Shown here piece after piece: positions 16,295-50,106 of a DNA stretch of 50,106 nucleotides (its first letter is position 1; each line of letters starts with the position of its first letter). Origin of the DNA: Macrostomum lignano. Taxonomy: Eukaryota. The notes under the pieces are model-generated. The model had not been told where the DNA came from. It saw only the letters and a program-made list of their open reading frames with translations, and did no database searches. Position numbers and translations under genes: made by a program. The DNA lies in the NCBI GenBank assembly GCA_002269645.1, contig NIVC01000502.1, positions 1 to 50,106 of the forward strand, given 5' to 3'.

Positions 16295-16295
16295 A

Positions 16296-25440: not shown

Positions 25441-25456
25441 TCCTTCACAAACGCAG

Positions 25457-26351: not shown

Positions 26352-26400
<49 letters not shown>

Positions 26401-32040: not shown

Positions 32041-32132
32041 CAATAAGGCGATTCTTTAAACGACTCATTAGTGACAATGCATATCCATAGTGACGGTCCG
32101 GTTGCTATGTGGCGGGTAAAGCATCGGAATGA

Positions 32133-34460
32133 TTAGTCTTCCCATTCGCTTTCGTCCTCATCATCATCATCAGACTCTGTACTGTCCTTTTCCACCGAGT
32201 CAATTTTATTCACAGCAGATTTCAAGTTACTCAACAGCTCGGCTCGCTGATTGTCAGTGGCAATTTTTGTACCGGGCGCAGGCGTCTTATCTGTCTTCTT
32301 GAACTTATTTAAGATGTCCTTAAAATTTGTGGGAGCTTCTTCTTCTTCTTCGTCTTTTGATGTGTCTTTATCCTTGTCGAATTTGTCCACAACGGGACTG
32401 GAACTGCCCTTCCGATTGGCTAGCTTCCTTTTCATTTCATTCACAACGCAGTCTTGATTAGTAACAGGGTTTTTTTCTACCTTCCGTTCAGGAAGATTGC
32501 GATTGCCAACCGGATTCAATTTCGCTCTTCCAAGCTGCATCGTCTCAGCAGTCAAGCCGCCGCCACCAATGCCTGGCATGGCCACTGCGCCGGGAGGAAG
32601 ATTAGGTCCGGGCGGTGCCGGCGGAGCAGGTGGGATGGGTCCGCCACCTTTCTTGATGACGATGGGCGGAGGCGGTGGTGGAGGGGGCGGAGGAGGCGGC
32701 GGAGCAGGTGGGATGTTACCACCAGATGTCTTGGCGCCGAAGGGCGGAGGCGGGGGAGGAGGGGGCGGAGGAGGCGGCGGAGCAGGCGGGATGTTACCAC
32801 CAGATGTCTTGGCGCCAAACGGCGGAGGCGGGGGAGGAGGGGGTGGAGGCGGCGGCGGAGCAGGTGGGATGTTACCACCAGATGTCTTGGCGCCAAAGGG
32901 CGGAGGCGGGGGAGGAGGGGGTGGAGGCGGCGGCGGAGCAGGTGGGATGTTACCACCAGATGTCTTGGCGCCGAAGGGTGGAGGCGGTGGAGGAGGCGGA
33001 GGAGGCGGCGGCGGAGCGGGAGGTATCTCTCCTGTCGGAGTAGCGTCTGTCTTTTTGACATTCTTCAACTTGTCATGCTTGAAGGCCCGCAAGGCCGCAT
33101 TCAATGGATCATTGGATTGGCCAAACGGACTGCTTTCACTGTTGTCAGGACTGCCAGGTGATGCCATTGTGTCATTCCCTCGACTCAAAAAGCTTTTACT
33201 TGGACTTTCGGGTGTCTGTGCGTGAACGCTCGGAACAGCAGGTGTACTCAAACAGTAGCTATCGGACCCTGGAGAACGGGCGCTCATCTTCAGTTTTTCA
33301 CTGCTTTCAGGACTGCCAGGTGCAGAAGCCGTTGTGTCATTCCCTCGACTCGGAGTGCTGTGGATTGGACTTTCTTGTCTGTCTGTGTGCACGCGCAGAA
33401 CAGGTGGTGTAGTCTCATATAAGCTCTCGGACGCTGGAGAACGGGCGCTCACCTGGGACGCAGGTGTCATCGGAGAATCAAAGCCTTCAGCAACGGCAAC
33501 CGCGTGTACCTGTTCCATACCGCCTATGCTGTTCACAATTTCTGAAATTTGCTCCCTGCCATGACTTGACTGCACAGTCTTATCCAAGTCATGGCCAAGT
33601 TTTCCAAGCAGGAACTTCAATGCCGGATCCTTAGCGATGTCCATCTGGTACTGGGCGCCTGTCTTTTGAGTATCGTTGTACCCAACGTGCAACACGTGGC
33701 GCACGTTAGTCGGACCGCTAATATCCTCGGGGCGGATTTTCTTGCTTTTGCCGGCGCCATCTGCGGTCTTATCCCGGTCCTTGCTCCTGCCTGGCTTGTG
33801 CCGCTTGAAGAATGCCTTCAGTCGGGCGCCCGTCTTCATTTTTGGAGAATTATCTGTGCTTTCCTTGTCTTTTCCCTTTTTCTTCTTGCTGCTTTTAACG
33901 TTGGGACTTTTGCCAACTCCAGGCGTACCAGACCTGCTGGGCCCTGAAGAGGGGCTCGACAGAGGCTCCGGAGTTGCCTCTCGAAGGCCCATCCGCTCAA
34001 CTTGTTGATTGAGCTGATTGGCGATCTCAGCAGCTTCAGCGCGTCCGATTTCCGTATTTTCAAAGTTGAACCCCACAACTTGGTCGTCGGCTTCAAACTG
34101 GTGAAATGTGTCGTCTTGGCTTTCGTATTCCATGCCCTGATAGATCTCTTGCTCGAATTTCAATTGGCGTCTGATTATATCGTAGAAGCGTAGGAAAAAT
34201 GAGCGACGATTAGCGTCGCGAACGAAGCAGAGAACGCCAGTCTCCTTCGGCACCCAGCGGCCCTGTTGAGCGTAAAATATTTGAGACACGGTGGCTGCTA
34301 GGGCGGTGCAGCGATCGCCCAGCAAGTTGAACAGTATGCCGGTCTCAATGGGACTTAACAGTCGGCTCTGATAGTTCTGAAAGCGAGGCGACTGAGGCGA
34401 CTGAGGCGACTGCAGTGGCGACTGGGGGCTGGCTGGAGAGCCAGAATTCGCACCCCTCAT
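32133..34460 (-). CDS. WASp: WASP family protein (copy 2), no intron in CDS, ~775 aa
   Basis: WH1 (LLGDRCTALA...GVLCFVRD...FEQEIY...HQFEAD), basic SKKKKGK, CRIB-like DISGPTNVRHVLHVG, polyPro repeats, acidic DDDDEDESEWED. Start taken at ATG 34460 because the ORF's first 24 codons look like a polypyrimidine tract/acceptor. Confidence 0.92.
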   Translation of the reverse strand: MRGANSGSPASPQSPLQSPQSPQSPRFQNYQSRLLSPIETGILFNLLGDRCTALAATVSQIFYAQQGRWVPKETGVLCFVRDANRRSFFLRFYDIIRRQLKFEQEIYQGMEYESQDDTFHQFEADDQVVGFNFENTEIGRAEAAEIANQLNQQVERMGLREATPEPLSSPSSGPSRSGTPGVGKSPNVKSSKKKKGKDKESTDNSPKMKTGARLKAFFKRHKPGRSKDRDKTADGAGKSKKIRPEDISGPTNVRHVLHVGYNDTQKTGAQYQMDIAKDPALKFLLGKLGHDLDKTVQSSHGREQISEIVNSIGGMEQVHAVAVAEGFDSPMTPASQVSARSPASESLYETTPPVLRVHTDRQESPIHSTPSRGNDTTASAPGSPESSEKLKMSARSPGSDSYCLSTPAVPSVHAQTPESPSKSFLSRGNDTMASPGSPDNSESSPFGQSNDPLNAALRAFKHDKLKNVKKTDATPTGEIPPAPPPPPPPPPPPPPFGAKTSGGNIPPAPPPPPPPPPPPPPFGAKTSGGNIPPAPPPPPPPPPPPPPFGAKTSGGNIPPAPPPPPPPPPPPPPFGAKTSGGNIPPAPPPPPPPPPPPPPIVIKKGGGPIPPAPPAPPGPNLPPGAVAMPGIGGGGLTAETMQLGRAKLNPVGNRNLPERKVEKNPVTNQDCVVNEMKRKLANRKGSSSPVVDKFDKDKDTSKDEEEEEAPTNFKDILNKFKKTDKTPAPGTKIATDNQRAELLSNLKSAVNKIDSVEKDSTESDDDDEDESEWED

Positions 34461-35169
34461 GTTCGAAGAGGACACGAGCTGCGAATTGGGCGCCAGAAGT
34501 GAAAAGCGAAAGAGTATGTAATCAATAATCAATATGGGATCAAAATGTCAAGTAAAAATATCGTTTGGACCCTATAATTATTAAAGGTAACAGCGAGTAA
34601 AAAAATAAGCGACTGTGTCTGTACGATTCAGACAAGTAGACTAATTTACTAATTTCATATGCGAAAGCAATGCTAGTAATGAATCATATTCAATCAAAAG
34701 AATAAACATAGTGACAATATCGTCGTCAACTAGAAAATCACCTTTTTAGAATGTATTTTTATCATCTTTATGTGAACACTTTACACTGATGCTACAAAAG
34801 CGTTTTAAAATGCATAAACACCACACCCCAAGGGAAGGCGGACGCGAGTGTTTGCGAGTATTGAGTAGCGTGACAGTGTGAATAGACACAACGGTCTTCT
34901 CAGCAGAAAGTCTATTTGTGCAGTACAGGAAATAGAAAAAAGAAAAAACTTCATGCAGCGTGAAAAAGGTAGAAGGTGAGGTAGGCTGAGTAAAAGCCAC
35001 GCGATATAAACCTTACGGCGGAGGGGTGCAGCGCAGAGGGGGGTTGACTTGGGGTTGATGTTAACAACCAATCAGCAAACGCCGATTGGATACCATATGC
35101 ATATATCGTACTTGCTTGATTTAACATTGATAGGCTTAAAACAGTAAAGATGTCTATGGTGGGGGTTCA

Positions 35170-35530
35170 AGGGGGGCCGTAGCCCAGCGGTAGCGCAGCT
35201 GCTCTGGTGTGCCAGCGACCCAGGCTCGATTCCAAGTGCAGTCACATTAATTTGGGGCTGAATTGGAATCTCGGCTTGGCTCTGCTCGTGCAATTAACGG
35301 CCTTGAGAGCCAACCCCCCAAGGCGCAGTGAAGTGTACATGCCTAACAATAATATAAAGTTAGGGCCGCTGTACACTCCTGTGTGAGTGTGTGCCTGCGT
35401 ACGTATCCGCGCGCTTGTATGCCTGCTCAGGGGAGTCGGCGGAATGGGCAGTAATGCCTCTCGCCGGTTGTGTGCCTATGTCGCTTAAAGTGCGCCAGGG
35501 TGCACACAACCCCCCTGCCTCTAATAAAAA
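35170..35530 (+). mobile_element. tRNA-derived SINE (~360 bp)
   Basis: A-box TAGCCCAGCGG (35180-35190), B-box GGCTCGATTCC (35223-35233), A-rich tail TAATAAAAA, and 14-bp flanking direct repeat ATGGTGGGGGTTCA (35156-35169; 35531-35544). Confidence 0.75.
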
Positions 35531-36006
35531 ATGGTGGGGGTTCAGAATGTCCATGCTGGGCTTGGACAGACCTATGTGGACAATTCCCCGGAAAATGTTT
35601 TTCCCGGGACCCTGGTGATTTTCCCTCTGTCTCTAGGTGCCCTGATATCCTCCCCGGGGAGAATTTCCGTTTTGTAATTTCATGCTAAGTTAACGATAGA
35701 ACTACCTACTGTAAATCTCCTCCCCTCCCTAAAAATGTTATAAGGTACGCTAGAACGGAGCAACGGAAGCACACGACATTCAGTAACACCGGCTAACGTT
35801 TTGTTGTGCACTTTCTCAAACAAAAATCAAGTCATCAGCCGAAAACAATTCTTGTCAGAAGGTCGGATTTTTCTTGTAAACGCTAATGTATTCAATGCAC
35901 CTCGGTGCGACAATCAGCACTGCACCTCATTGCGGGCTAGCCCAACCTTCAAATTTCATCAGGACGTCGACCACATGTGCCTAGATCGGCTCTGACGACT
36001 TCGTTG

Positions 36007-36151
36007 GTCATTGTCGTTGCCGGACAGTACGAGAGCGCAAGCGCCCCATTGGATAGCCGGTTTACCAATTGGAGTGTGGGCCAGCACTATGGGCAAGCCG
36101 TAGGCCGACACCACCAGGACCGAGGTGAGAAATATTGCGGTCTCCCAGGCG
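36007..36151 (-). pseudogene. LEPROT: LEPROT/Vps55 copy B, truncated exon-3 fragment
   Basis: 36017-36151 is identical to 44012-44146. 36007-36016 matches 43957-43966, implying a 45-nt in-frame deletion. The acceptor, the 5' part of the exon and the native stop are missing. Confidence 0.85.
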
Positions 36152-36169
36152 GACATAATTCTTTAACCA

Positions 36170-36290
36170 GCTGCCGACTGCAAATGTCCGGCTGGCAAAC
36201 GTCGGCTGGCAAACGTGGCTTGCAAATGTCCGCTGGCAAATGTCCGGCTGGCAAACGTCGGCTGGCAAACGTCCAGCAGGCAAACGTCGT
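36170..36290 (+). repeat. Short degenerate tandem repeat (GGCTGGCAAACGTC / GGCTGGCAAATGTCC)
   Basis: About 8 units abutting the LEPROT-B fragment. Confidence 0.8.
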
Positions 36291-36764
36291 AGACCCAGAT
36301 TAAAAGCCCCTGCACGATGTATTTATTAGAACAAGTTAGGGGCATTTAAGATAACAGAGGGTCGCGGAGTCACAGTAGAGAGAAACGGTGGTTAGAGAAG
36401 GCGATCGATAATTTTATTTCACGCGTACAGCACCAGTAACTCTTAATACGTAGAATACGTAGAATATACTAATAAAATACGGTTGTTACGTAGAAAGAGG
36501 GGAGGGCCCAGCGAAAAAGAATGCGAGCGTAGCAAAAACGGACGAAATCCGGGAGCTGCAGAGCAAGACCAATTTCACAATAGTGAAAAAAGCAGAGTAA
36601 CAGCTTTTTTATTTTTCTTCCAGTAGTTGTTTGCGCAGTGCCCCTCATAAATTTAATGTGGCAGCTAAAATTTACTTTCCTCAATAGGGGGTTTGTGGCC
36701 ACAGGGGTTTTGAAATGCAATGAACGGCCAGCATTTAACTCGATAGACAAATGAACGCAAGAGG

Positions 36765-37236
36765 GACGAAACTCAGCCATCTAGCTCAGCCAATGAGAAA
36801 GCAGTAGGGAGAGAAGTCAAAGTCAAACTGACGAAACTCGCCCTAGGGGGGCAGGCCTAAATCTAGCTCAGCCAATGAGAGGGCAGTAAGGAGAGAGGTC
36901 AAAGTCAAACTGACGAAACTCGCCCTAGGGGGGCAGGCCTAAATCTAGCTCAGCCAATGAGAGGGCAGTAAGGAGAGAGGTCAAAGTCAGACTGACGAAA
37001 CTCGCCCTAGGGGGGCAGGCCAAAATCTAGCTCAGCCAATGAGAGGGCAGTAAGGAGAGAGGTCAAAGTCAGACTGACGAAACTCGCCCTAGGGGGGCAG
37101 GCCAAAATCTAGCTCAGCCAATGAGAGGGCAGTAAGGAGAGAGGTCAAAGTCAGACTGACGAAACTCGCCCTAGGGGGGCAGGCCAAAATCTAGCTCAGC
37201 CAATGAGAGGGCAGTAAGGAGAGAGGTCAAAGTCAG
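36765..37236 (+). repeat. 82-bp tandem repeat, ~5.7 copies, each with AGCCAATGA and TGACG motifs
   Basis: CTAGCTCAGCCAATG recurs at 36781, 36863, 36945, 37027, 37109 and 37191. Confidence 0.95.
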
Positions 37237-37686
37237 AAACAAGTAGGCAAAAGGAAAACCTAACTGTTTATCGGCCTTGCTGGGGGCTGAGACGCCACCC
37301 CTTTACTCACTTGCTCGCTATGCACACGCAATGAATTCGATTTTGGCGGTGCTCTCCTTAGCCTTCCTTTCAACCTCCATATCGTCTAGGACACTACGGA
37401 TATATATATATCCAGGTTTTACTCCGATAACCCGATAACCCTGGTTTGGTTCTGTCTGGCACATTTTAGCCATAGACTATGAAATGGACAGTTTGACAAA
37501 CAGACAGAAATCCTAGCAGTAAATTTTGGTTTGCGTAATCTCGAGTGCTTTTTTTGAATAAAATAAACGCATTTTCTCAGTCTGACTGTCTATCTCACAC
37601 TCAATGGATACGCATAAAATCGTAAGCAGGTCCAATGAAGATTGGCAGTAAAAGTACAATCAATTAGTTAAACAAACGAATCTCAC

Positions 37687-37762
37687 CCATACTGAGGCAG
37701 TGCGCAAGCCAACAATAGAAAGGTAAGACCGACCGAGGCGGAAAATGACAGTAGAATGATAC
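37687..37762 (-). CDS. LEPROT: LEPROT/Vps55 copy B exon 2 (intact)
   Basis: TTTTACAG|(G)IILLSFSASVGLTFLLLACALPQYG|GTGAGA, 76 nt. Differs from copy A by two synonymous changes. Confidence 0.8.
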
Positions 37763-37827
37763 CTGTAAAATCGAATGAAAAGTAGATTATTTACTAATCA
37801 AGTTTCAAAGTCAAATTCAAGACTTAC

Positions 37828-37846
37828 CTTTGACTCCGGCACCCAT
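37828..37846 (-). CDS. LEPROT: LEPROT/Vps55 copy B exon 1 (MGAGVK-G)
   Basis: ATGGGTGCCGGAGTCAAAG|GTAAGT, identical to copy A exon 1. Confidence 0.8.
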
Positions 37847-38924
37847 TTTGAATAAAGTGTTTTGAAGTTTAATCGAATTGGCTGAAACGAAAATGCATCA
37901 GATTATGAGGATACGCAAAGTGTAGGAGTCTAGAGCACTATAGTCTCTTTAAAATAGTTATCCTCTAATATATTTGAGAATCATAATTTTATATTTAGAC
38001 CTAAGGGATATGTTCCTTTCGTGTCAGATTCGTGTCAGAATGATAAGATATTTGAAGACGGTGAAGTTAGGATAGGCTATAACTAATGTTACTGTAGTTA
38101 AATTAGCAGAAAAGTTCCTATATTGATAGTTTTACTCACAAAACGAGGGCTTTAAAAACAGTACTTTAACGTGATCTAAAGAAATGGATACGACCGTCTT
38201 TTTTAAATTGATGAAGAAGGCCCACATGGCAATAGATACCCGTAGATCAATGGAACAGGGTCACCGGTCACCGTGAAAACAAGACGGATTGTGTTGAAAA
38301 TTCGAAAATTCCAATTATCGAATTCATTTAAATTGTGATGTGACCAAGAGGAATAAAAGACTTTATGATATGAAATTTAAAGCTTCTGAAACGCAATGAG
38401 TATAAGTACCTACAAAACAGATAGAAGCAAAAGAATATAAAAAAAGAATAAACAAAAAACACCAAAATATTTTCTTCTCTCAAATTAAAATAGTTCTCAT
38501 TTTACCGTTTGTACTTTTTTTCGTCCAAACGCAATAAAAACAAAAATGTAAATAAAATTTTAGTGAAAATAAAACGAAAGCCATATCGTGTTCATTAAAA
38601 GTAAAACAAAATGCAAAACTTCAATATGCATGTGACATGCATACGATAGATAAGCTGACCAGCTGATCAAACTTATCAGAATAATTAATTTAACTCAAAT
38701 CGAGACGAAAAAAAATCCTATTTGATAAAGAAAATGCAACCTAGAACAGAATTTATCAAGCATACCAAGCATGATAAAAACTTAAAATAGCTTTTTTCAA
38801 ATCAGACCAACGAGACGGCCTCAAAAGTAAAGACTCGTTGCAGAATAGCTGACATGGCATTTCATTCACGATTTTCCCTCGTAGCAGTCAGCCAATTGTT
38901 GTTAGCACAAGTAGGTCGGAATGA

Positions 38925-41018
38925 TTAGTCTTCCCATTCGCTTTCGTCCTCATCATCATCATCAGACTCTGTACCGTCCTTCTCCCCCAAGTCAATTTTA
39001 TTCACAGCAGATTTCAAGTTACTCAACAGCTCGGCTCGCTGATTGTCAGTGGCAATTTTTGTACCGGGCGCAGGCGTCTTATCCGTCTTCTTGAACTTAT
39101 TTAAGATGTCCTTAAAATTTGTGGGAGCTTCTTCTTCTTCTTCTTCTTTTGATGTGTCTTTATCCTTGTCGAATTTGTCCACAACCGGACTGGAACTGCC
39201 CTTCCGATTGGCTAGCTTCCTTTTCATTTCATTCACAACGCAGTCTTGATTAGTAACAGGGTTCTTTTCTACCTTCCGTTCAGGAAGATTGCGATTGCCA
39301 ACCGGATTCAATTTCGCTCTGCCAAGCTGCATCGTCTCAGCAGTCAAGCCGCCGCCACCAATGCCTGGCATGGCCACTGCGCCGGGAGGAAGATTAGGTC
39401 CAGGCGGTGCCGGTGGAGCAGGTGGGATGGGCCCGCCACCTTTCTTGATGACGATGGGCGGAGGCGGTGGTGGAGGGGGTGGAGGAGGCGGCGGAGCAGG
39501 TGGGATGTTACCACCAGATGTCTTGGCGCCGAAGGGCGGAGGCGGTGGAGGAGGCGGAGGAGGCGGCGGCGGAGCGGGAGGTATCTCTCCTGTCGGAGTA
39601 GCGTTCGTCTTTTTGACATTCTTCAACTTGTCATGCTTGAAGGCCCGCAAGGCCGCATTCAATGGATCATTGGATTGGCCAAACGGACTGCTTTCACTGT
39701 TGTCAGGACTGCCAGGTGATGCCATTGTGTCATTCCCTCGACTCAGAAAGCTTTTACTTGGACTTTCGGGTGTCTGTGCGTGAACGCTCGGAACAGCAGG
39801 TGTACTCAAACAGTAGCTATCGGACCCTGGAGAACGGGCGCTCATCTTCAGTTTTTCACTGCTTTCAGGACTGCCAGGTGCAGAAGCCGTTGTGTCATTC
39901 CCTCGACTCGGAGTGCTGTGAATTGGACTTTCTTGTCTGTCTGTGTGCACGCGTAGAACAGGTGGTGTAGCCTCATATAAGCTCTCGGACGCTGGAGAAC
40001 GGGCGCTCATCTGGGACACAGGTGTCATCGGAGAATCAAAGCCTTCAGCAGCGGCAACCGCGTGTACCTGTTCCATACCGCCTATGCTGTTCACAATTTC
40101 TGAAATTTGCTCCCTGCCATGACTTGACTGCACAGTCTTATCCAAATCATGGCCAAGTTTTCCAAGCAGGAACTTCAATGCCGGATCCTTAGCGATGTCC
40201 ATCTGGTACTGGGCGCCTGTCTTTTGAGTATCGTTGTACCCAACGTGCAACACGTGGCGCACGTTAGTCGGACCGCTAATATCCTCGGGGCGGATTTTCT
40301 TGCTTTTGCCGGCGCCATCTGCGGTCTTATCCCGGTCCTTGCTCCTGCCTGGCTTGTGCCGCTTGAAGAATGCCTTCAGTCGGGCGCCCGTCTTCATTTT
40401 CGGAGAATTATCTGTGCTTTCCTTGTCTTTTCCCTTTTTCTTCTTGCTGCTTTTAACGTTGGGACTTTTGCCAACTCCAGGCGTACCTGAACTGCTGGGC
40501 CCTGAAGAGGGGCTTGACAGAGGCTCCGGAGTTGCCTCTCGAAGGCCCATCCGCTCAACTTGTTGATTGAGCTGATTGGCGATCTCAGCAGCTTCAGCGC
40601 GTACGATTTCCGTATTTTCAAAGTTGAACCCCACAACTTGATCGTCTGCTTCAAACTGGTGAAATGTGTCGTCTTGGCTTTCGTATTCCATGCCCTGATA
40701 GATCTCTTGCTCAAATTTCAATTGGCGTCTGATTATATCGTAGAAGCGTAGGAAAAACGAGCGACGATTAGCGTCGCGAACGAAGCAGAGAACGCCAGTC
40801 TCCTTCGGCACCCAGCGGCCCTGTTGAGCGTAAAATATTTGAGACACGGTGGCTGCTAGGGCGGTGCAGCGATCGCCCAGCAAGTTGAACAGTATGCCGG
40901 TCTCAATGGGACTTAACAGTCGGCTCCGATAGTTCTGAAAGCGAGGTGACTCAGGCGACTGAGGCGACTGCAGTGGCGACTGGGGGCTGGCTGGAGAGCC
41001 AGAATTCGCACCCCTCAT
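38925..41018 (-). CDS. WASp: WASP family protein (copy 3), no intron in CDS, ~697 aa
   Basis: Near-identical to copy 2 but three 26-aa proline repeats shorter; acceptor TTCAG| at 41052/41051 lies upstream of ATG 41018. Confidence 0.92.
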   Translation of the reverse strand: MRGANSGSPASPQSPLQSPQSPESPRFQNYRSRLLSPIETGILFNLLGDRCTALAATVSQIFYAQQGRWVPKETGVLCFVRDANRRSFFLRFYDIIRRQLKFEQEIYQGMEYESQDDTFHQFEADDQVVGFNFENTEIVRAEAAEIANQLNQQVERMGLREATPEPLSSPSSGPSSSGTPGVGKSPNVKSSKKKKGKDKESTDNSPKMKTGARLKAFFKRHKPGRSKDRDKTADGAGKSKKIRPEDISGPTNVRHVLHVGYNDTQKTGAQYQMDIAKDPALKFLLGKLGHDLDKTVQSSHGREQISEIVNSIGGMEQVHAVAAAEGFDSPMTPVSQMSARSPASESLYEATPPVLRVHTDRQESPIHSTPSRGNDTTASAPGSPESSEKLKMSARSPGSDSYCLSTPAVPSVHAQTPESPSKSFLSRGNDTMASPGSPDNSESSPFGQSNDPLNAALRAFKHDKLKNVKKTNATPTGEIPPAPPPPPPPPPPPPPFGAKTSGGNIPPAPPPPPPPPPPPPPIVIKKGGGPIPPAPPAPPGPNLPPGAVAMPGIGGGGLTAETMQLGRAKLNPVGNRNLPERKVEKNPVTNQDCVVNEMKRKLANRKGSSSPVVDKFDKDKDTSKEEEEEEAPTNFKDILNKFKKTDKTPAPGTKIATDNQRAELLSNLKSAVNKIDLGEKDGTESDDDDEDESEWED

Positions 41019-42268
41019 GTTCGAAGAGGACACGAGCTGCGAATTGGGCGCCTGAAGTGAAAAGCGAAACAGTATGTAATCTATAAACAATACGGGATAA
41101 AAATGTCAGGTAAAATATCGTTTGGACCCTATAATTATTAAAGGTAACAGCGAGTAAAAAATAAGCGACTGTGACTGTACGATCCAGACAAGTAGACTAA
41201 TTACTAATTTCATATGCGAAAGCAATGCTAGTAATTAATCATATTCAATCAAAAGATAAAACACCGTGACAATATTGTCGTCAACAAGAAAATCACTTTT
41301 TTTGCAGTGTATTTTTAACGATCCCAATTTAAACACTGTACAGTTGTGCAAGAGCCTAGGACAACATTTTGTATACGATTGATTTAAATACGTAGGCTTG
41401 AAACGGTAAAGGATTGGTACTAGTGCAATAAATTTATTCAGATTTAAACAGACAGCGTGCAATAGGGCGGGCTGAGGTGCGAAGTTGTTCGACCGGGTGA
41501 CTGGACTTGAAGCTGGTGAGGGGTTAGGCTAGGAAAACAGAAGCAGATCCAAATTGCCGTAGAAGGCTTCAGTGTCGATGAGACGCGCTTTGGTCATTAG
41601 ACTGCCAGTGTAGGTAAATGCAACACTATCCATTGGCATGCCTGTAAGGGGAAATCTAGTGTGCAATGTTGGTTACACTGTAAAGGCATACAAAAAGGCA
41701 GGCTGGCAGTCAAATATCGTGGAATTTTATAGTTGTAAACAAAGTTAGCCTTCACGGAGCTATAAAACTATGAGCTGGAAAATTGGGAAATTCCTACATG
41801 TAAAATGCACTAATTGAAAACAGTAATATAAGAAAAAGAACAAGTCGTCAGACATTGATAAATGTAAATATAGTCACTGGATGAACCATATACATGTAGT
41901 GTGCCAGGCCATCTCGTAGCTGCTTCTGTCACTGTGTTAACGACGCACGACTGAAATGGCCAATTGTTGAAATGTTTTCTACTTTTAATTTATGTAAAAT
42001 TTGCTGGTAAAAAATCCGAAATATTTTTATAAAAACTCGCATAAAACGTATAGCGAATAAACGTAGGACGCCTGTTCATAGTGGAATATAGCCGTGATTT
42101 TTACTCGTAACCTCTGCAGGTTTGGCGAGCCAATGTGTTCAGCTGCAGTGTTGGACACGTTTCCGTTAATAAGAGTTGATGCTTTTTTTAGAATAATCAA
42201 CGGACCATCGTTAATTTTTTAGGTAAGGGAATAGCAATTTTGCGAAACTCTTTGTCGCCTTCCATTAC

Positions 42269-43009
42269 CTTGTTACTTCTTTTTCTAGATTTCCTACAAG
42301 ATTTTTCACACTTTGTCGTCCCACTGACGACAGTTATTTTAGACATAATCGGCTTAGCTTTCTTAGAAAGCTGTTATTTTAAATTTCAGATCAATTGCGT
42401 AATCACAATATACTTAAAAAAGTATATACTACTAGCAGTAATGCTACTGGCACACTTGGTAGATGTACCTTGGTGCGCACTGCATGGGTGGCTGGCGCGG
42501 GCGATTGTTGGCTGCAACAGGGGAGGGAGAGCTCTAGTTTTTCCATTTTTAACGTAGTGTGCTGTTAGAAAGTTACTTATTTTTTATTTCAACACTATAA
42601 CGTTTTTGCCCCACTATAGTGAAATTTACTGTTTTTAACAACGCTGTGCAACACTGCTCAGATGATTATGACTAAATTCCTGACAAAGAGCATTCCAATT
42701 CCATTTTGTGCTTTGAACATGGCACAAATTTAACTGGGAAACTTAAAACTTCATTAACATGGTTCATCTCAAGCTCAAGTTCTCAAGCAAGCTTGATTTT
42801 TTTAAACTTTAACACGTGTACAGCTTTAAAGTTATCAACATTTAATGTGGCATCCGAGTTTGAAAAGGTTAAGCTTAGAGCCTAAAAATCGAAAAGCAGG
42901 CCATTTGATTAATGATTGGAAATAAAGCAAAAATTAACTAAAACGAAACACAAACTTAAACAATTATAATTCGAACGGATAAACAAACAACTTACGTCAA
43001 TGCATCCAT
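42269..43009 (-). other. Candidate unannotated spliced gene (exons 43009-42996, 42511-42469, 42370-42269)
   Basis: Three segments with GT/AG boundaries and mutually consistent phases read MDALTQQSPAPATHAVRTKLSKKAKPIMSKITVVSGTTKCEKSCRKSRKRSNK; no recognisable homology. Confidence 0.3.
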
Positions 43010-43374
43010 TCCTATATGCTTGAAGCGGCGAATTTGAACGCGTGGTTTTTTCATAATTTTTATTTTGTGAATAGTATACAATCTTTTTGGTACAATGAAA
43101 TTTTACAGCACTGAATAATCGCTATTACACAGCGCAAATCTAACAGCTAATACATGTGAAGCCATATAAAAAACAATGTACAAAAATAGAAATAACTGTA
43201 ACAGATGAGAATTTTTAAAGCGCGATTCTCGTACCATCTGTCAGAGAAGCAGTGTTGAAACTGAAGTTGAAATAAAAAAACAGCATAATCAAAAACTTGA
43301 AGCGAGCCTAGAATTCCCACGATAGGTTCAAGTCCTTAAGGTGGCTTCAATGATGCTTATGATGGACTAAGAAT

Positions 43375-43752
43375 GCCTATGGTAGGTTCAGGACTTCAGG
43401 TTGTCCATGGTGGGTTCAGGATGTCCATGTTGGGTTCAGAATGTCCATGGTGGGTTCAGGATGTCCATGTTCGATTCAGAATGTCCATGATGGGTTCAGG
43501 ATGTCTATGATATGTTTCGGATGTCCATAGTGGGTTCAGGATGTCCATGGGGTGCTTAGGATGTCCATAATGGGCTCAGGATGTCTATAGTGGGTTCAGG
43601 ATGTCTACGGTTGGTTCGGGATGTACATGGTTGGTTCACAATGTCCATGGTGGGTTCAGGATGTTTTTGGTGGGTTTAGGATGTCCATGTTGTGTTCAGG
43701 ATGTCCATGGTGGGTTCAGGATGTCCATGATGTGTTCAGGATGTCCATGGTG
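43375..43752 (+). repeat. 20-bp degenerate minisatellite (GGTGGGTTCAGGATGTCCAT)n
   Basis: About 18 units downstream of the LEPROT-A stop. Confidence 0.93.
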
Positions 43753-43932
43753 GTATAGACCAATCCTGTGAACTCAGAATGAGTTTTAGTGAGCTCAGAA
43801 AGTATTTGGCTCCAAGAATTTCAGGAAGATATACGTTTTAGTGCAAGAGAAAAACCGGTTGCACAACATAGAAGAGAATAGATATGAGGCAAAAAGTACA
43901 AAATCTTAGGTATTAGTATCAGTTACAGCCAA

Positions 43933-44245
43933 TCACCAAGCCGAATAAGAGAATCCGTCATTGTCGCGGAATACTAGAAAGAATCCCAGAATAGTGAGAA
44001 ACATGACGGTATTGCCGGACAGTACGAGAGCGCAAGCGCCCCATTGGATAGCCGGTTTACCAATTGGAGTGTGGGCCAGCACTATGGGCAAGCCGTAGGC
44101 CGACACCACCAGGACCGAGGTGAGAAATATTGCGGTCTCCCAGGCGACGCCAGACGTTGATATCGAGTCCGAAATGCGCTTGGCTAACAGGTAGGGCACC
44201 GGAGCCAACAGGTAGAAAATTAGCACAAACATTGGCCACCACATT
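43933..44245 (-). CDS. LEPROT: Vps55/leptin receptor gene-related protein (LEPROT/endospanin), copy A exon 3
   Basis: CCGTTAG|A ATG TGG TGG: (G)MWWPMFVLIFYLLAPVPYLLAKR...[23 protein letters not shown]...[27 protein letters not shown]...FSYSAW* matches the Vps55-family pattern (WPLFVL.F...P.P..IAKR...VSAFG.P..L...I.WGA..LVL.GN). Confidence 0.92.
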
Positions 44246-44605
44246 CTAACGGATTGGAGGGTTGCGTGGGCGATGTGTAAGACGGCGCAATCAAAGTCCA
44301 GAGCAAACATTGTTTTTCACAGTGTATGCGGCCATTTTTTTCTATTTCCTGCTTTCTACATTATACTCCTGAGCTTTAAACCTTATTTCATAAATATTCT
44401 CGTTGCTTTAGACCAGAAGGAAAGCATAAATGCATATAACACTGCAATTAAAATAATTTATTGATGGGCTCCTTATCGAAAGTACAAATCGCTGCTTGAA
44501 ACTCTGCTTAGCCATCTTTTCAATCTCCCTATCGTCCAGTTTAGGACATTACGGATATTTATAACCAGGTTTTACATGTCGCAGACGCCCTGGTTTCGTT
44601 CTGTC

Positions 44606-45054
44606 CACAGATACTAGAATAACTAGTTGGGCCACTCAGCACATTTGCGTGTAAGCTATTTTCAGTTCAGTAGCAATTTAAACGGAAGCATTTTAATATA
44701 TTTTAAAGATAAGGTTCATTTATTGCTTAACCCCCGTCCAATTAAACCTCCAACCGCGCTTTTCTTTCCAATCTACCCCCCCCGCCCGCCCAATTTTAAC
44801 TGCCTTTCTCGGAAATTCCAGCCTAAAGCGGCCATGTACATTTCAGTGGACTGGCTAATGTACATCACTGCCGAACCAATTAGCAAGCTGTTTACGCCTG
44901 CAAGCTTGGGCTTATAAACTTATCAAAGTGATTTCAGCTGCCTTTGTTTATAAAATAGCTTATGCATTCTTCTTTGCTACTGAACTGAAAGTAGAAAGCT
45001 GTTTTACTAAGTATATATGCCTGAGTGGCCTATCTAGTTACTTTAGTATCTGTG
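44606..45054. mobile_element. P-element-like (or hAT) MITE, 449 bp, in LEPROT-A intron 2
   Basis: ~34-bp imperfect TIR CACAGATACTA.A.TAACTAG.T.GGCCACTCAG; 8-bp TSD GTTCTGTC (44598-44605; 45055-45062); a single GTTCTGTC (empty site) at the paralogous position 37449-37456. Confidence 0.85.
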
Positions 45055-45308
45055 GTTCTGTCTGACACATTTTAGCCATAGGCTATAAAATGGACATTGG
45101 ACTGTCAGAAAAACAGTCAGAAATCCGAGCAGATAAATTTTGCTTTGCGTAATCTCGAGTGCTTTTTGAATAAAATGAACGCATTTTCTCGAGTCCGAAT
45201 GAGTCCACCTCACACTACTCAATGGATATAAATCATATAGTAAACAGGTCCAATGCAGTAAAACGAGCAGTAAAAGTACAATCAATTAGTTAAACAAACA
45301 AATCTCAC

Positions 45309-45384
45309 CCATACTGAGGCAGTGCGCAAGCCAACAATAAAAAGGTAAGACCGACTGAGGCGGAAAATGACAGTAGAATGATAC
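45309..45384 (-). CDS. LEPROT: LEPROT/Vps55 copy A exon 2
   Basis: TTTTACAG|GT ATC ATT CTA...CAG TAT GG|GTGAGA: (G)IILLSFSASVGLTFLLLACALPQY(G), matching the first TM segment of LEPROT; not in the ORF track. Confidence 0.88.
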
Positions 45385-45450
45385 CTGTAAAATCGAATGA
45401 AAAGTACATTATTTACTAATCAATGTTTCAAAGTCAAATTCAAGACTTAC

Positions 45451-45469
45451 CTTTGACTCCGGCACCCAT
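45451..45469 (-). CDS. LEPROT: LEPROT/Vps55 copy A exon 1 (MGAGVK-G)
   Basis: ATGGGTGCCGGAGTCAAAG|GTAAGT, compare MAGVKA in vertebrate LEPROT. The joined CDS (19+76+313 nt) gives a complete 135-aa protein. Confidence 0.88.
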
Positions 45470-46442
45470 TTTGAATAAAGTGGTTTGAAGTTTAATCGAA
45501 TTAGCAGCAACGAAAACGCATCAGATTATTGAAACATGCGAAGTGTAGAAGTCTAGAGTACCAGTCTCTTTAATATAGTTAGCGTCTAACATCATTTAGA
45601 CTTAACAGTGACACTGACCCATTCTTTGTGTCTGATACGTGTCAGAATGACAAAAAGTGAAAACGGTTGAAGTGAGGTGATAAATGATGTTATGTTAGGC
45701 AAACTAACTTGAAAGGTTTTTTAAATTGATGAAGAATGCAAAGAGCAGGCGCTCAGCGAAACAGGGCAGAGATAAGAACAGATGGATAACTTTCAGAAGC
45801 TTGATAATTGCCACAGTCGAATTCATTTAAATTCTGAGCAAGCGGAATTGACTATTTTAAGCTTCTGGAACGTCATAAACATAAGTAGCGACACTAGAGA
45901 AAAACGAAAAATAAAATAAAATAAATAAAACCAAAGACAATGATATTGTATAAACTAAAATCAAAATAGCTCTATTTGTGTTTTTTATCAAATACTCGTA
46001 GTAGTAAACACAAAAACTTGCCCCCAAAGAGCAAAGCCCCGAGCAAAATCGGGTAAAATGAAAGCCATATCGAGTTCATTGAAAGAAAAACAAAATGCGA
46101 TATGCATGCAGCATGCATCAGACAAATAAGTTTACCAGCTGATCAAACTTATCGGAATGAATCAACTTAACTAAATAGACGGCAAAAACAAATAAAGTTT
46201 TTGATAACGAAAATGCAGGTGGGAAAATTTTTATTTAACAGAAGTTATTCGCGCGGCGTGTTTCAAACATAACAGAAACTTGTTTTTTTTCAAATTAGAC
46301 CAACAAGACGGCATCAAAAGTCAAGACTCGTCGCAGAATAGCTGGCATTGCATTTACGATTTGTGTCACAGAACTTGCTTAAAGTGCGTGTTTCTGTCTG
46401 CCAATTGACGGTTAATTTTAAATACGGAAAGGAAAGTCGGAA

Positions 46443-48727
46443 TCAGTCATCCCATTCGCTGTCTTCTTCATCATCATCATCAGAGTCGTCACTGCCATGT
46501 TGAGCTTTATTTATTTCGTCTAAAGCTTTGCTCAACGCATTCACAATATCATTTTTGTCAGGCTCTGCAGTCGTTGGCTTAGGCGGAACGGCGCGTGGCC
46601 CTTTGCCCTGGTTTATCGTCTTGAACACGTTCTTATAACAGATTGGACTATTGTCGACCCCAGAATCGCTTTCGTCATCCTTTTTAAATTCGTCCACATC
46701 GGGACTGGAACTGCCCTTCGCGTTGACAAAAGCACCTTTTATTTCATTCACAACGCAGTCATGATTAGTAGCAGGGTTCTTTTCTACCTTCCGTTCAGGA
46801 AGATTGCGATTGCCAACCGGATTCAATTTTGCTCTGCCAAGCTGCATCGTCTCAGCAGTCAAGCCGCCGCCACCAATGCCTGGCATGGCCACTGCGCCGG
46901 GGGGAAGATTAGGTCCGGGCGGTGCCGGCGGAGCAGGTGGGATGTTTCCGCCACCTTTCTTGATAACGATGGGCGGAGGCGGGGAGGGGGCGGAGGCGGC
47001 GGCGGAGCAGGCGGGATGTTACCACCAGATGTCTTGGCACCAAAGGGCGGAGGCGGTGGTGGAGGGGGTGGAGGAGGCGGCGGAGCAGGCGGGATGTTAC
47101 CACCAGATTTTTGGCGCCAAAGGGCGGAGGCGGGGGAGGAGGGGGCGGAGGAGGCGGCGGAGCAGGTGGGATGTTACCACCAGATTTCTTGGCGCCGAAG
47201 GGCGGAGGCGGTGGAGGAGGCGGAGGAGGCGGCGGCGGAGCGGGAGGTATCTCTCCTGTCGGAGTAGCGTTCGTCTTTTTGACATTCTTCAACTTGTCAT
47301 GCTTGAAGGCCCGCAAGGCCGCATTCAATGGATCATTGGATTGGCCAAACGGACTGCTTTCACTGTTGTCAGGACTGCCAGGTGAAGCCTTTGTGTCATT
47401 CACTCGACTCAAAAGCTTTTACTTGGACTTTCGGTGTCTGTGCGTGAACGCTCGGAACAGCAGGTGTATTCAAACAGTAGCTATCGGACCCTGGAGAACG
47501 GGCGCTCATCTTCAGTTTTTCACTGCTTTCAGGACTGCCAGGTGCAGAAGCCGTTGTGTCATTCCCTCGACTCGGAGTGCTGTGATTGGACTTTCTTGTC
47601 TGTCTGTGTGCACGCGCAGAACAGGTGGTGTAGTCACATAGAAGCTCTCGGACGCTGAGAACGGGCGCTCATCTGGGACACAGGTGTCATCGGAGAATCA
47701 AAGCCTTGGGAAGCGGCAGCTGCGTACACCTGCTCCATACCGCCTATGCTGTTCACAACTTTTGCGATTTGCTCCCTGCCATAACTTGACTGCGCAGTCT
47801 TATCTAAATCGTAGCCAAGTTTTCCAAGCAGGAACCTCAACGCGGGATCCTTAGCGATGTCCAGCTCGTACTTGGCGTCTTTGTTTTGAGCATCGTTGTA
47901 CCCAACGTGTAAGACGTGACGCGAATCAGTTGGACCGCTAATATCCTCGGGCGGATTTTCTTGCTTTTGCCGGCGCCTTCGACAGTCTTATCCCGGTCCT
48001 TGCTCCTGCCTGGCTTGTGCCGCTTGAAGAATGCCTTCAGTCGGGCGCCAGTTTTAATTTTTGGAGGCTTCTCAGCGCTTTCCTTGCCTTTTTTCTTCTT
48101 TTTACCGTTTTTGCCTTCTGAGCTGTCCGCTGATGGGCTCGACAGAGGCTCCGGAATATCCTCGCGAAGACCCATTCGCGTAACTTGGTGATTAAGATGA
48201 TTGGCTATTTCTTCAGCTTCAGCTCGTCCAATTTCGCTTTCCATAAAGTTTACAGCCACAACTTTATCGTCGGCTTCAAACTGGTACAAAGTTGGGTCCA
48301 CACGTTCGTATTCCATGCCCTGATAGATTTCCTGTTCAAAAATCAAGCTGCGCTCATTTATATCGTAGAAACGTAAAAAAAATGAGCGTCGATTAGCGTC
48401 GCGAACAAAAGAGAGGACGCCAGTGCACTTTAGCTTCCAGCGGCCATGTTTACTGAAGAACAATCTACAAACTGTGGTTGCTAAGGCTGTACAACGATCG
48501 CCAAGTAAGCTAAACAGTATTTCATTTTCGTTGGCAGTCAAAATTTGACTAGGACGGTTTTGATAGCGCATCGTCTGCGACCTTTGGCCAGCTGATTGCA
48601 TCAATTGAGCCGATGATTGCCCTGATCGTAACCAATCTGGAGTCGGTGGTGTTTGCGGTGATTGCGTCTGCTCCGGCCTGTTCGGCAGGACAGAGTTAGA
48701 GGCCGACGTGGGCTCCAATTGGGGCGC
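46443..48727 (-). CDS. WASp: WASP family protein (copy 4), broken by about seven 1-nt deletions (pseudogene or assembly error)
   Basis: WH1 and basic region in ORF 47837-48862; GBD, Ser-rich, polyPro and VCA pieces in ORFs 47634-47840, 46909-47412 and 46443-46892; ends DDDDEEDSEWDD*. Acceptor ACCGCAG| at 48728/48727; first downstream Met at 48601. Confidence 0.8.
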
Positions 48728-49495
48728 CTGCGGTATAACAATTGATTGGGTTCGTATGCTTAGTATGTGAACATGGACAGCTGACTGGATATCTTTATGA
48801 TCATATTTGTTGCTAAAATCTATATTTCTATCCTTTAAAAAAGCAAATGAAGGCAAGCACATAAAATCAAAAAGAAAATATCGACTTGCTACTCGAGCCT
48901 GAAAGTAGAACTGAATACGTATATTTTTTTAAAAAATATAAAAATTTGGAAAATATAAAGAACACGAATAGTCTTGATACTGTAAATTGTAAATTTTATA
49001 CATACAATATGAGCAATTATAAAATGGAAAAGGCCTTTTATTAGCTCAGTCACTTAAACAATCAATGAAGAATGAAGAATCCAATCAATCAATCAAACAA
49101 TCAATGAAGAATAGAAGCCTTTTGACGAATTTGACTAATATTGGCACATATTCATCCTTGCGTCGAATACTTGTATAATTAAAATCCGTGATTTTTTTGT
49201 TTCAACAGATGGTAAAACTAAGAAAAGTGAGAATAATAAAAAAGATGCGGAGCTAAAAAATCAGAAACTACTGCGATTTCTAAACCTAAAAATTTTTTTG
49301 CTAAATGATAAGTTGATTTTATCGAGGATCTTGTTTAAGTTTAAATTTTAATTTACTTTTATCAATGGGATGAGTGTACACGAAAAGCTTATTTATTGTC
49401 AACTCTTTTATTTGTAGACGAATAATTTGATTCTTTTTTGGAATAAAGGACAATCGTTACGATTAATAGACAAACAAGTGACAGACACGACGGGT

Positions 49496-50089
49496 ACCTC
49501 TCATTTCGCCGATTCTCGTTTCGCCGAATCTTATTCTGCCGATTCTCGTTTCGCCGACATTCTCATTTTGCCGATTCTCGTTTCGCCGAAATTAATTTCA
49601 CAACCATCTGGACATCAAACCATGGACAAATACACTAATATAAATGTGATTTAGATGTTTATGGCTTGAAAAATAAAGTTAAAATTAAGAATTCTTCCTT
49701 CTACATAGTCTATGGTAAAAAGTCTATAGCCAGTGGTATATATATATAGTAGGGTTGTGAAATACAAAAATGCCGATTGAAATCGTTTCTAGTGGCTTTT
49801 CTGGTGAAATAAATAAGTGGTTTTATTGCATTGACTTCTGAATTGAATGAGTTAAAACTACGCTCGTAATGCTGGTAAGCTAACGAAATTAAGCTGCAAA
49901 AAGGCTATGGTAGGTAAATACTCGCGCAATATTACTAATACAATACTTTATTTTTTAAGCCATAGTAGACATCTAAATCAACATTTGCATTAGTGTAGTT
50001 TGTCCTATAGTCTAATGTCCAGATGGTTATGAAATTAATTTCGGCGAAATGTACAGTAAGTACAAATGTACAGAAAATGTAAAGTACAT
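49496..50089. mobile_element. MITE-like element with ~50-bp subterminal inverted repeats
   Basis: TTTCGCCGAAATTAATTTCACAACCATCTGGACAT... (~49580-49630) is inverted at ~50000-50050; short ATTCTCGTTTCGCCG repeats at the left end; 13-bp direct repeat AGACACGACGGGT at 49483-49495 and 50090-50102. Confidence 0.55.
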
Positions 50090-50106
50090 AGACACGACGG
50101 GTCTTG

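Follow-up and report, generated by a model that had tools for sequence, protein, structure and literature searches.

A tandem array of WASP and LEPROT genes in Macrostomum lignano: a probable old duplication with later gene conversion

WASP is usually a single-copy gene in invertebrates. The window analysed here, a stretch of 50,106 nucleotides that constitutes the entire contig NIVC01000502.1 (contig 502) of the Macrostomum lignano assembly Mlig_3_7, had been described in a first-pass annotation as carrying four WASP paralogues, which raises the questions (i) whether all four are WASP genes in good order; (ii) how the copies arose and diverged; (iii) whether each of them is real rather than a product of assembly; and (iv) whether they represent a lineage-specific expansion.

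An array of WASP genes interleaved with LEPROT, which encodes a small membrane protein, is present in contig 502. Its minus-strand order is the one first proposed (WASP4 > LEPROT-A > WASP3 > relic of LEPROT-B > WASP2), the stop-to-stop spacings are indeed 7518 and 6792 bp, and the ORF positions confirm that WASP2–4 converge on WASP1, which lies on the plus strand. WASP2 (minus strand, 32133–34463 in an ORF of 32133–34532, ATG at 34463) and WASP3 (minus strand, 38925–41021 in an ORF of 38925–41090, ATG at 41021, preceded by a CAG acceptor at 41054–41052) are single-exon genes of 776 and 698 aa, each with one intact ORF, and a 23-bp minisatellite (30597–32020, no strand assigned) closes the array just downstream of WASP2. 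What holds of the four-paralogue claim is that four genes with WASP architecture occur in this order and at this spacing; WASP4 (minus strand, 46443–48601 from the first ATG past an acceptor at 48730–48728, in pieces between 46443 and 48862) has a broken frame and is not one ORF in the window.

Exon 1 of WASP1 (plus strand, 24076–24375, ATG at 24076) encodes the first two-thirds of the WH1 domain and ends in a GTAAGT donor, and exon 2 (plus strand, 25457–26776) encodes the remaining WH1, the CRIB motif, a poly-proline region, a weak WH2, the C helix and an acidic tail terminating in ...NEWEDD, for a complete protein of 539 aa. The splice junction is borne out by UniProt A0A1I8I9X7, which reads ...AFFHQVEADNCVVGFNF. 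The sole intron (plus strand, 24376–25456, phase 0, between ...FHQ and VEAD...) is filled by a 22/28-bp minisatellite, is polymorphic in length relative to contig 655 (NIVC01000655.1), and has no counterpart in WASP2–4.

Pfam searches and alignment recovered the WH1 domain, CRIB-like motif and tryptophan-bearing acidic tail that had been ascribed to all four genes. WH1 (PF00568, cut-off 22.4 bits) scored 79.3 bits in WASP2, 79.8 in WASP3, 73.9 in WASP4 and 69.8 in WASP1 exon 1, with E-values of 1e-20 to 1e-22 for WASP2–4 and 2e-19 for WASP1. The CRIB/PBD profile (PF00786, cut-off 21.3 bits) was passed by WASP1 (26.4), WASP2 (22.3) and WASP3 (22.6), while WASP4, scanned in its contig 655 reading rather than in the window sequence, fell slightly below it at 20.1 bits. 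Lys/Arg-rich stretches precede the CRIB motif in all four proteins, and from the translations the proline-rich region is built of 26-aa modules (IPPAPPPPPPPPPPPPPPFGAKTSGGN) in WASP2–4 and of long proline runs in WASP1. For WH2 (PF02205, cut-off 23.1 bits), no Pfam match was obtained in WASP2–4 (the scan is cited for WASP3 and WASP4), and WASP1 reached 12.6 bits; in the alignment, ...NFKDILNKFKKTDK... occupies the position of LLxxIRxGxxLK in canonical WASPs, and ...LGRAKLNPV... resembles ...QGRKLNPV... of Priapulus. The C helix and acidic tail align with those of nine canonical WASPs as AELLSNLKSAVNKI...DDDDEDESEWED in WASP2 and WASP3, DIVNALSKALDEIN...EEDSEWDD in WASP4 and DMLSALKAAMRDIN...DDNEWEDD in WASP1. 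By analogy with the family, these proteins would be Arp2/3 activators gated by Cdc42 and PIP2, with a putative layout of WH1, basic region, CRIB/GBD, Ser/Pro-rich stretch, proline modules flanked by WH2-like motifs, and a terminal V-C-A containing the conserved tryptophan; the copies would differ chiefly in WH1, in the C-terminal linker and in how many proline modules they carry (2 to 5).

LEPROT-A, a member of the Vps55 family (minus strand, span 43933–45469), has three exons (45469–45451, 45384–45309 and 44245–43933) encoding 135 aa, in a splice pattern that reproduces the annotated 146-aa, 5'-partial model of contig 508. It matches PF04133 (Vps55) with 93.3 bits (E 1e-26) over profile positions 14–119 of 120. 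LEPROT-B is broken, as had been noted: there remain exons 1 and 2 (minus strand, 37846–37828 and 37762–37687, with a small intron between them), which are about 98% identical to LEPROT-A and encode the same peptide, and a 135-nt patch of exon 3 (minus strand, 36017–36151), which is 100% identical to LEPROT-A 44012–44146 and in which homology stops abruptly at both sides. As exon 3 is only 135 nt long, the full four-helix protein cannot be encoded, and the fragment matches the Vps55 profile only at positions 63–102 (E 1.5e-9).

Intergenic homology between approximately 37370–38920 and 44520–46440, also reported on the first pass, was borne out by alignments of 37352–37456 with 44502–44605, of 37447–38127 with 45053–45730 (81% identity), and of the WASP3 3' flank (minus strand, 38199–38916) with the WASP4 3' flank (45717–46434, about 73–75% identity), into which the WASP3/WASP4 alignment runs unbroken through the stop codon. 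Taken together, the WASP3 3' flank and LEPROT 5' region are 72–87% identical to the WASP4 unit, with order and orientation kept. The whole WASP2–WASP3 spacer ("unit B", minus strand, 34793–38915) is colinear with the WASP4-to-WASP3 spacer, although degenerate, and contains tandem repeats at 36180–36289 and 36779–37237. Because the flanks are only 72–87% identical, the duplication of the WASP-LEPROT unit appears to be old, and because the unit includes an intron-bearing LEPROT, it was DNA, not mRNA, that would have been duplicated.

We consider it improbable that WASP2–4 descend from a retrocopied WASP1-like mRNA whose copy was tandemly duplicated afterwards. Each of these genes consists of one exon, without the only intron found in WASP1, in a species whose genes average about five introns (PMC5730564), but only a single minisatellite-filled intron is at stake, for which gain in WASP1 or simple loss is equally possible, and no poly(A) remnant is visible past the WASP stops. 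Moreover, the unit holds intron-bearing LEPROT and intergenic DNA, so that the tandem steps, at least, took place at the DNA level; the combination of intron loss, poly(A) remnant and absence of neighbouring genes that marks a retrocopy was not found for WASP2–4.

Divergence along the WASP copies is uneven. Between WASP3 and WASP4, identity is 61–79% in WH1, 97–100% in the centre and 45–66% at the 3' end, and dS by region is 1.13 (WH1), 0.35, 0.06 (centre) and 0.39 (C-terminus). The central tract of WASP4 (minus strand, 46800–47650), which is 97–100% identical to WASP3 (39300–39975) and to WASP2 and is flanked by sequence of 45–79% identity, is from this pattern a putative gene-conversion tract. 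WASP2 and WASP3 are 96–97% identical throughout 32124–34792 and 38916–41349, and no homology was found between their flanks upstream of 34792 and 41349; they differ in their number of 26-aa poly-proline modules (five in WASP2 and two in WASP3, with four in WASP4). The WASP copies are under purifying selection, with pN/pS of 0.17 for WASP2 versus WASP3, 0.07 for WASP1 and 0.05–0.09 for WASP4 across the three copies compared (23–25 synonymous versus 7 non-synonymous differences).

This last value bears on the broken frame of WASP4. Relative to WASP3, the gene has five one-base deletions (47952, 47658, 47585, 47435 and 47412) and a 4-bp gap near 46983, and relative to both sister contigs a base is missing at seven places between 46981 and 47949. 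Were WASP4 a decaying pseudogene, the array would have only two working genes of the WASP2–4 type. Consistent with this, every copy seen has a lesion: in addition to the seven deletions in contig 502, the contig 655 copy, which reads as one ORF, has three private one-base gaps in WH1 that scramble 20 residues, and the contig 508 copy contains a 917-bp element that has perfectly matching 15-bp terminal inverted repeats and is accompanied by a 9–10-bp target duplication. The CRIB score just below the Pfam cut-off points the same way. However, the pN/pS across the three copies is far from neutral, each small lesion is restricted to a single contig, one-base indels separate the window from contig 655 even in stretches with 0.0–0.2% mismatches, which is the pattern of consensus errors, and on two contigs WASP4 is covered by gene models derived from transcripts. 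We therefore regard the pseudogene reading as highly improbable. The seven deletions are probably consensus errors, since they are private to contig 502 and lie partly within a stretch that is nearly mismatch-free relative to a sister contig; they also fall largely in the tract that is 97–100% identical among paralogues. Read polishing is hardest in tracts shared by paralogues (the assembly method of Mlig_3_7 is given in PMC5730564).

The main caveat concerns WASP2, the youngest copy, which rests on a single contig of a redundant, triple-subgenome assembly. The M. lignano genome is neopolyploid and was assembled as three subgenomes, whose variants are about 2% divergent where they align, and 36% of the length of Mlig_3_7 lies in chimeric scaffolds (PMC10733133); raw copy counts are therefore inflated. 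The alternative to be weighed is that each subgenome has one WASP2/3 gene and that contig 502 places variants of it from different subgenomes in tandem, so that the true local count would be three WASPs, namely WASP4, one WASP2/3 gene and WASP1, which is the set on contig 655. Contig 655 has just one WASP2/3-type gene, running from LEPROT-A through this gene directly into the 23-bp minisatellite and on to WASP1; over the stretch examined, it lacks the WASP2–WASP3 spacer. WASP2, WASP3 (99.7% identical to its contig 508 copy, which has two small frame-disrupting indels) and the contig 655 copy amount to exactly three sequence types that are mutually equidistant, with pS of 0.035–0.048 and interleaved diagnostic sites, and the pS of 0.048 between WASP2 and WASP3 equals the divergence between subgenome copies; an identical pattern would be expected from a single gene with one allele per subgenome. 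Contig 502 is itself a mosaic, in which stretches nearly free of mismatches to contig 655 or to contig 508 alternate, the arrangement of WASP3, spacer and WASP2 is seen in this one 50-kb contig only, and expanded, collapsed and chimeric regions are known in Mlig_3_7 (PMC10733133; PMC5730564).

Against such stacking, the 4.1-kb spacer matches no subgenome variant seen. It diverges by 13–28%, compared with the subgenome level of about 2%, the WASP3/WASP4 alignment carries on through the stop codon into its right end with about 73% identity, and it carries LEPROT exons 1–2 and the exon 3 piece in the order and orientation of the tandem unit. What lies downstream of WASP3 is a 73–87% paralogue of the WASP4 unit instead of the minisatellite. 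For a false join, the break would have to coincide exactly with a stop codon, in a region of just 45–66% identity between WASP3 and WASP4, and the module numbers of WASP2 and WASP3 differ. Genes and flanks colinear at about 2%, as in uncollapsed haplotypes, are not what we observe: the genes fit (pS 0.048), the flanks do not. The internal structure of the spacer argues against simple haplotype stacking without proving the tandem arrangement, and we judge an assembly artefact somewhat unlikely. Given the subgenome-level divergence of WASP2 and WASP3, the single gene on contig 655 and the mosaic nature of contig 502, WASP2 is therefore provisional.

In the account that we consider probable, an old tandem duplication was followed by conversion among WASP copies that remained under selection, with the breaks in WASP4 as errors. 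In the Macrostomum lineage, a single-exon WASP would have been duplicated as DNA along with the adjoining downstream flank and a LEPROT gene of three exons. The surviving units would be WASP4 with LEPROT-A and then WASP3 with the decayed LEPROT-B, and WASP2 would be a third gene that ends the array against the minisatellite, facing WASP1. Later gene conversion would have homogenised the centres of WASP2–4 and nearly all of WASP2 and WASP3; in LEPROT-B its traces would be small patches of perfect identity. That contig 655 has a single WASP2/3 gene is most readily accounted for by unequal recombination in that subgenome, with WASP3 and WASP2 as partners, or by assembly collapse.

In a phylogeny, a check suggested on the first pass, WASP2–4 come out as one clade in 196 of 200 bootstrap replicates (98%). 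Their nearest relatives are WASP1 and Mlig017355 of M. lignano, not the WASPs recovered from parasitic flatworms, but the node uniting every M. lignano WASP reaches a bootstrap of only 58%. Among 1.84 billion representatives, no match from outside M. lignano was found at 40% to 63% identity, and the best outside matches are annotated N-WASP/WASL proteins from Priapulus, Bugula, insects and sponges. WASP1 (A0A1I8I9X7) and the Mlig017355/Mlig016111 group share the WH1 plus CRIB layout of WASP2–4 and group with them in the WH1 tree, with WH1 identities to WASP2–4 of 43% (WASP1) and 28–38% (Mlig017355). Unlike WASP2–4, WASP1 has kept an intron, and its poly-proline region is contiguous, with WH2 after it; Mlig017355 lies on other contigs. 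A fifth WASP type sits elsewhere in the genome. WASP1 appears to be older and more canonical than WASP2–4. The proposal of a lineage-specific expansion of actin nucleation-promoting factor genes is thus partly supported: the WASP architecture of all four genes, the WASP2–4 clade and purifying selection favour it, whereas the weak monophyly of all M. lignano copies, the inflated copy counts and the points raised above about WASP2 qualify it. We would only tentatively go further and see in WASP2–4 a Macrostomum-specific subfamily that is single-exon and selected, with conversion-homogenised centres, divergent WH1 and pre-VCA linker, variable proline modules between WH2-like motifs, co-transcription with LEPROT in a long spliced-leader-processed unit, and a role split between tissues or partners. 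Transcript support is indirect, consisting of annotated gene models that are partly chimeric, and Arp2/3 activation is predicted from what is known of the family.

M. lignano is a transgenic model for regeneration and stem cells, in which a WASP knockdown meets at least five paralogue types, each in up to three subgenome copies and with stretches that are 97–100% identical between paralogues. RNAi, CRISPR design and read mapping must allow for these near-identical paralogues. The locus also exemplifies three problems of this assembly: leftover one-base errors in the consensus that make a gene look like a pseudogene, annotated models that switch from one paralogue to another, and copy numbers that vary from one subgenome contig to the next.

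The array resembles concerted tandem arrays in its colinear units, mosaic divergence, a copy number that differs between homologous chromosomes, and a decaying passenger gene; unlike in those, the comparison here is between neopolyploid subgenomes in a draft assembly, and the assembler may cause part of the pattern. LEPROT-A is alike almost end to end to LEPROT/LEPROTL1 (endospanin; yeast Vps55) on the Pfam Vps55 profile, and its N-terminus and exon layout are similar to those of human LEPROT, whereas LEPROT-B, with exon 3 cut to 135 nt, is a relic. With WASP/N-WASP proteins (human WAS and WASL, Drosophila WASp, C. elegans WSP-1), the array WASPs share WH1, the basic stretch, CRIB/GBD, a proline-rich region, a putative terminal WH2-like motif, the C helix and the Trp-bearing acidic tail. 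They differ in having a WH2-like motif upstream of the proline modules, approximately 95 residues between the GRAKLNPV motif and the C helix, a proline region made of 26-aa modules in 2 to 5 copies, Val or Ser in place of Phe in the CRIB motif and, in WASP2–4, a WH1 just 30–38% identical to that of outside WASPs. Overall, the array belongs to a familiar class of gene-family expansions and does not represent a novel type of system.

Using an ORF list, Pfam scans and self-alignment of the window, we reproduced the gene map proposed in the first-pass annotation, in which WASP4, LEPROT-A, WASP3, a LEPROT-B relic and WASP2 follow one another on the minus strand and converge on a plus-strand WASP1. 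The stop-to-stop spacings that it gave (6792 and 7518 bp) are exact, and the intergenic homology that it claimed is real by self-alignment. The same locus is found on two more contigs of the Mlig_3_7 assembly, NIVC01000655.1 and NIVC01000508.1 (contigs 655 and 508; the window is contig 502). WASP2 (32133-34463, minus strand, 776 aa from the ATG) and WASP3 (38925-41021, minus strand, 698 aa) are each a single uninterrupted ORF with WH1 and CRIB domains detected by Pfam. WASP1, on the plus strand, has exons at 24076-24375 and 25457-26776, with a GTAAGT donor, a 1081-bp intron and a splice junction matched by UniProt A0A1I8I9X7; a 22/28-bp minisatellite at 24451-25439, the repeat register of which differs between contigs 502 and 655, fills nearly all of this intron. 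LEPROT-A, a gene of the Vps55 family of membrane proteins, is encoded on the minus strand in three exons (45469-45451, 45384-45309 and 44245-43933; 135 aa), and the same splice pattern also yields the annotated 146-aa, 5'-partial model of contig 508.

Several other elements were observed on the contig. Between WASP1 and WASP2, on the plus strand at 27810-27929, lies a gene resembling Y RNA and nematode stem-bulge RNA, which matches the full Rfam model RF01656 at 46.8 bits (gathering score 38) and Y_RNA (RF00019) at 25.3 bits, and which has the conserved GGUCCG...UUGACC stem and a UUUU end. The same intergenic region contains a 292-bp inverted repeat (29255-29546/29694-29985; 93.9% identical, 147-bp spacer), possibly of foldback or MITE-like type. 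Positions 1-23000 consist largely of minisatellites, in at least 15 arrays. Among these are two (ATCT)n arrays (6701-7714, 15826-16340) and an 18-bp array that occurs once in each orientation (7-849, 2804-3774). A plus-strand ORF at 1108-1557 encodes, mainly within ~1340-1540, a muscleblind-like CCCH zinc finger (Pfam zf-CCCH_10, E 1.7e-9), and probably represents a single exon of a larger gene that extends beyond the contig.

The spacer between WASP3 and WASP2 (34793-38915) bears on how the array arose. Past the WASP3 stop codon, the stretch 38199-38916 prolongs the WASP3/WASP4 alignment at ~73% identity, and is followed, in unchanged order and orientation, by a LEPROT 5' region with 81-87% identity to the WASP4 unit. 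As flank and LEPROT are thus colinear with the WASP4 unit, the original unit would have comprised WASP, flank and LEPROT, and would have been duplicated at the DNA level, long before the subgenomes diverged; a retrogene origin is unsupported. Along the WASP3/WASP4 pair, WH1 shows 61-79% identity, the centre 97-100% and the 3' end 45-66%, with dS values along the regions of 1.13, 0.35, 0.06 and 0.39. For WASP2 versus WASP3, an identity of 96-97% begins ~280-330 bp before the ATG and extends to 9 bp beyond the stop. Gene conversion thus appears to have overprinted the duplication history of the array.

The perfect patches of LEPROT-B are likewise best read as gene conversion. In this relic, the first two exons, together with their small intervening intron (37687-37846), are ~98% identical to LEPROT-A, and all that is left of exon 3 is a perfect 135-nt patch with abrupt edges (36017-36151); around these two islands of 98-100% identity, the spacer is 72-87% identical or unalignable. 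Gene conversion is the likely source of the conserved islands, with a truncated LEPROT-B product as a possible alternative. Splicing at a candidate AG acceptor (36161) would let the 135-nt patch continue the reading frame of exon 2.

How much of this arrangement reflects the genome depends on the assembly. Mlig_3_7 was built with Canu from PacBio reads, with subsequent Pilon polishing, and has known redundancy (PMC5730564); it contains three subgenomes, S, L1 and L2, with a SNP divergence of ~1.9-2.4%, and chimeric scaffolds account for 36% of its length (PMC10733133). In alignments, mismatches to the window amount to 2.0% for the fetched piece of contig 655 (L001) and 1.3-1.8% for that of contig 508 (L002), the latter compared up to its last 3150 bp, the stretch 3' of its WASP3; at these distances the three contigs fit the three-subgenome picture. 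Within 38900-50106, the window is a mosaic: mismatches fall to 0.0-0.2% against contig 655 (47-50 kb) and against contig 508 (39-42 kb), and between these stretches amount to 1.4-4.6% against both. This could be due to natural exchange between subgenomes or to a chimeric consensus.

Contig 655 carries LEPROT-A and one gene of the WASP2/3 type, followed directly by a 23-bp minisatellite and then by WASP1, and lacks any equivalent of the 6.8-kb, spacer-containing unit. We considered whether the assembler stacked three subgenome alleles of one gene. Such alleles would give identical distances, and WASP2, WASP3 and the contig 655 copy are indeed equidistant (pS 0.035-0.048), the last agreeing with either of the other two, interleaved, at the sites where these differ; the mosaic structure of the window points the same way, and WASP3 shares 99.7% identity with its contig 508 copy. 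Simple haplotype stacking was nevertheless rejected, as the make-up of the spacer is at odds with it: no sequence is known of which the spacer would be a ~2% variant, and it is built like a degenerate tandem unit, adjoins the WASP3 stop as judged from its homology to the WASP4 unit, and ends in a WASP 5' flank. Because of this anatomy, we favor a real tandem, one unit of which would have been removed in contig 655 by unequal recombination (or assembly collapse), as the probable reading, and regard an assembly artefact as unlikely. Independent support for the spacer and WASP2 was sought in word-indexed protein searches, which returned only the database records P0001 and P0002 and the window's own C-terminal WASP product, P0003; exact look-ups of a 125-aa ORF containing LEPROT-A exon 3 and of two spacer ORFs gave no match. 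WASP2 is to be taken as a provisional copy.

WASP4 is not a single ORF in the window. Relative to WASP3 it has five one-base deletions and a 4-bp gap, and relative to both sister contigs it is short by one base at seven places within 46981-47949. We read these deletions as consensus errors because the missing base is present in both sister contigs at every site; because the one-base indels persist against contig 655 despite 0.0-0.2% mismatches (47000-50000); because the window's deletions lie largely in the tract of 97-100% identity between paralogues, where short-read polishing is least reliable; and because the three WASP4 copies, with 23-25 synonymous versus 7 non-synonymous differences, have a pN/pS of 0.05-0.09. 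The same ratio, the near-zero mismatches and the restriction of each lesion to a single contig (in contig 655, three private gaps scramble 20 WH1 residues) led us to reject a pseudogene as the main reading. The only WASP4 lesion that is certainly real is a 917-bp insertion in the coding sequence of the basic region on contig 508 (L002 10689-11605, corresponding to window ~48045), which is found in neither the window nor L001. It is a non-autonomous DNA element, the 15-bp terminal inverted repeats of which (CCTATTGGAATAAGT) match perfectly, and has a target duplication of 9-10 bp (GGCGCCCGAC).

The annotated WASP4 models on contigs 655 and 508 begin right after a CAG acceptor (window 48730-48728), which is also conserved upstream of WASP3, and carry the number of a third gene within a transcriptional unit; the two upstream gene calls of contig 508 are a RING-finger gene and a short-chain dehydrogenase gene. 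Since polycistronic, trans-spliced units are frequent in M. lignano (PMC5730564), these models suggest that the array may be transcribed as a long unit. In the models of P0001 (L001 10001-19105) and P0003 (window 46886-38925), WASP4 sequence is continued by WASP3 from the homologous position onward, so that the products are chimeric or truncated; this switch is a mapping artefact.

Among 1.84 billion representatives, scanned in full, there were 620 relatives, with identities above 40% only in M. lignano. Named matches included WASP1, the Mlig017355/Mlig016111 group on three other contigs, which is a fifth M. lignano WASP type, and N-WASP-like proteins of many phyla. (UniProt A0A1I8IWF9, our record P0156, is likewise a chimeric model, with a prefoldin domain fused to the WH1 of a Mlig017355-type WASP.) Of 200 bootstrap replicates on the WH1 domain, 196 recovered WASP2-4 as monophyletic and 117 did so for all five M. 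lignano types, so that the deep node is weak; in the single WH1 tree, parasitic flatworms clustered separately from M. lignano, a grouping not recovered in bootstrap replicates. WASP1 is the M. lignano type least diverged from outside WASPs. In the library searched, we found no paper on Macrostomum and WASP/Wiskott-Aldrich, nor any on these gene identifiers. The lineage-specific expansion proposed in the first-pass annotation is supported by the WASP2-4 clade and its exclusively M. lignano closest relatives, with a weak deep node. Based on the scan, the named matches and the bootstraps, the expansion is plausibly specific to the Macrostomum lineage, of which M. lignano is the species sampled, and is larger than the window shows. 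The first-pass interpretation is partly supported. In our reading, the WASP paralogues of the array are lineage-specific, arranged in tandem and evolving in concert, with LEPROT as a passenger gene.

As had been claimed, all four WASPs retain WH1, a CRIB-like motif and the acidic-Trp tail, by Pfam and by alignment with canonical WASPs, the CRIB of WASP4 falling just under the Pfam cut-off. Their layout runs from WH1 through a basic stretch, the CRIB/GBD and proline-rich sequence to a terminal WH2-like motif, C helix and acidic-Trp tail, and this terminal part aligns with canonical WASPs; from knowledge of the family, WASP1-4 should be Cdc42- and PIP2-gated Arp2/3 activators. The Pfam WH2 domain was undetected in WASP2-4, WASP3 and WASP4 giving no match even at a relaxed threshold. 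In contrast to the standard WASP layout, WASP2-4 have a Ser/Pro-rich tandem duplication after the GBD, a WH2-like motif (LNAALRAFKHDKLKNV) before a series of 26-aa proline modules (five in WASP2, two in WASP3 and four in WASP4), and a second WH2-like motif, LGRAKLNPV, after these modules, separated by ~95 residues from the terminal V-C-A.
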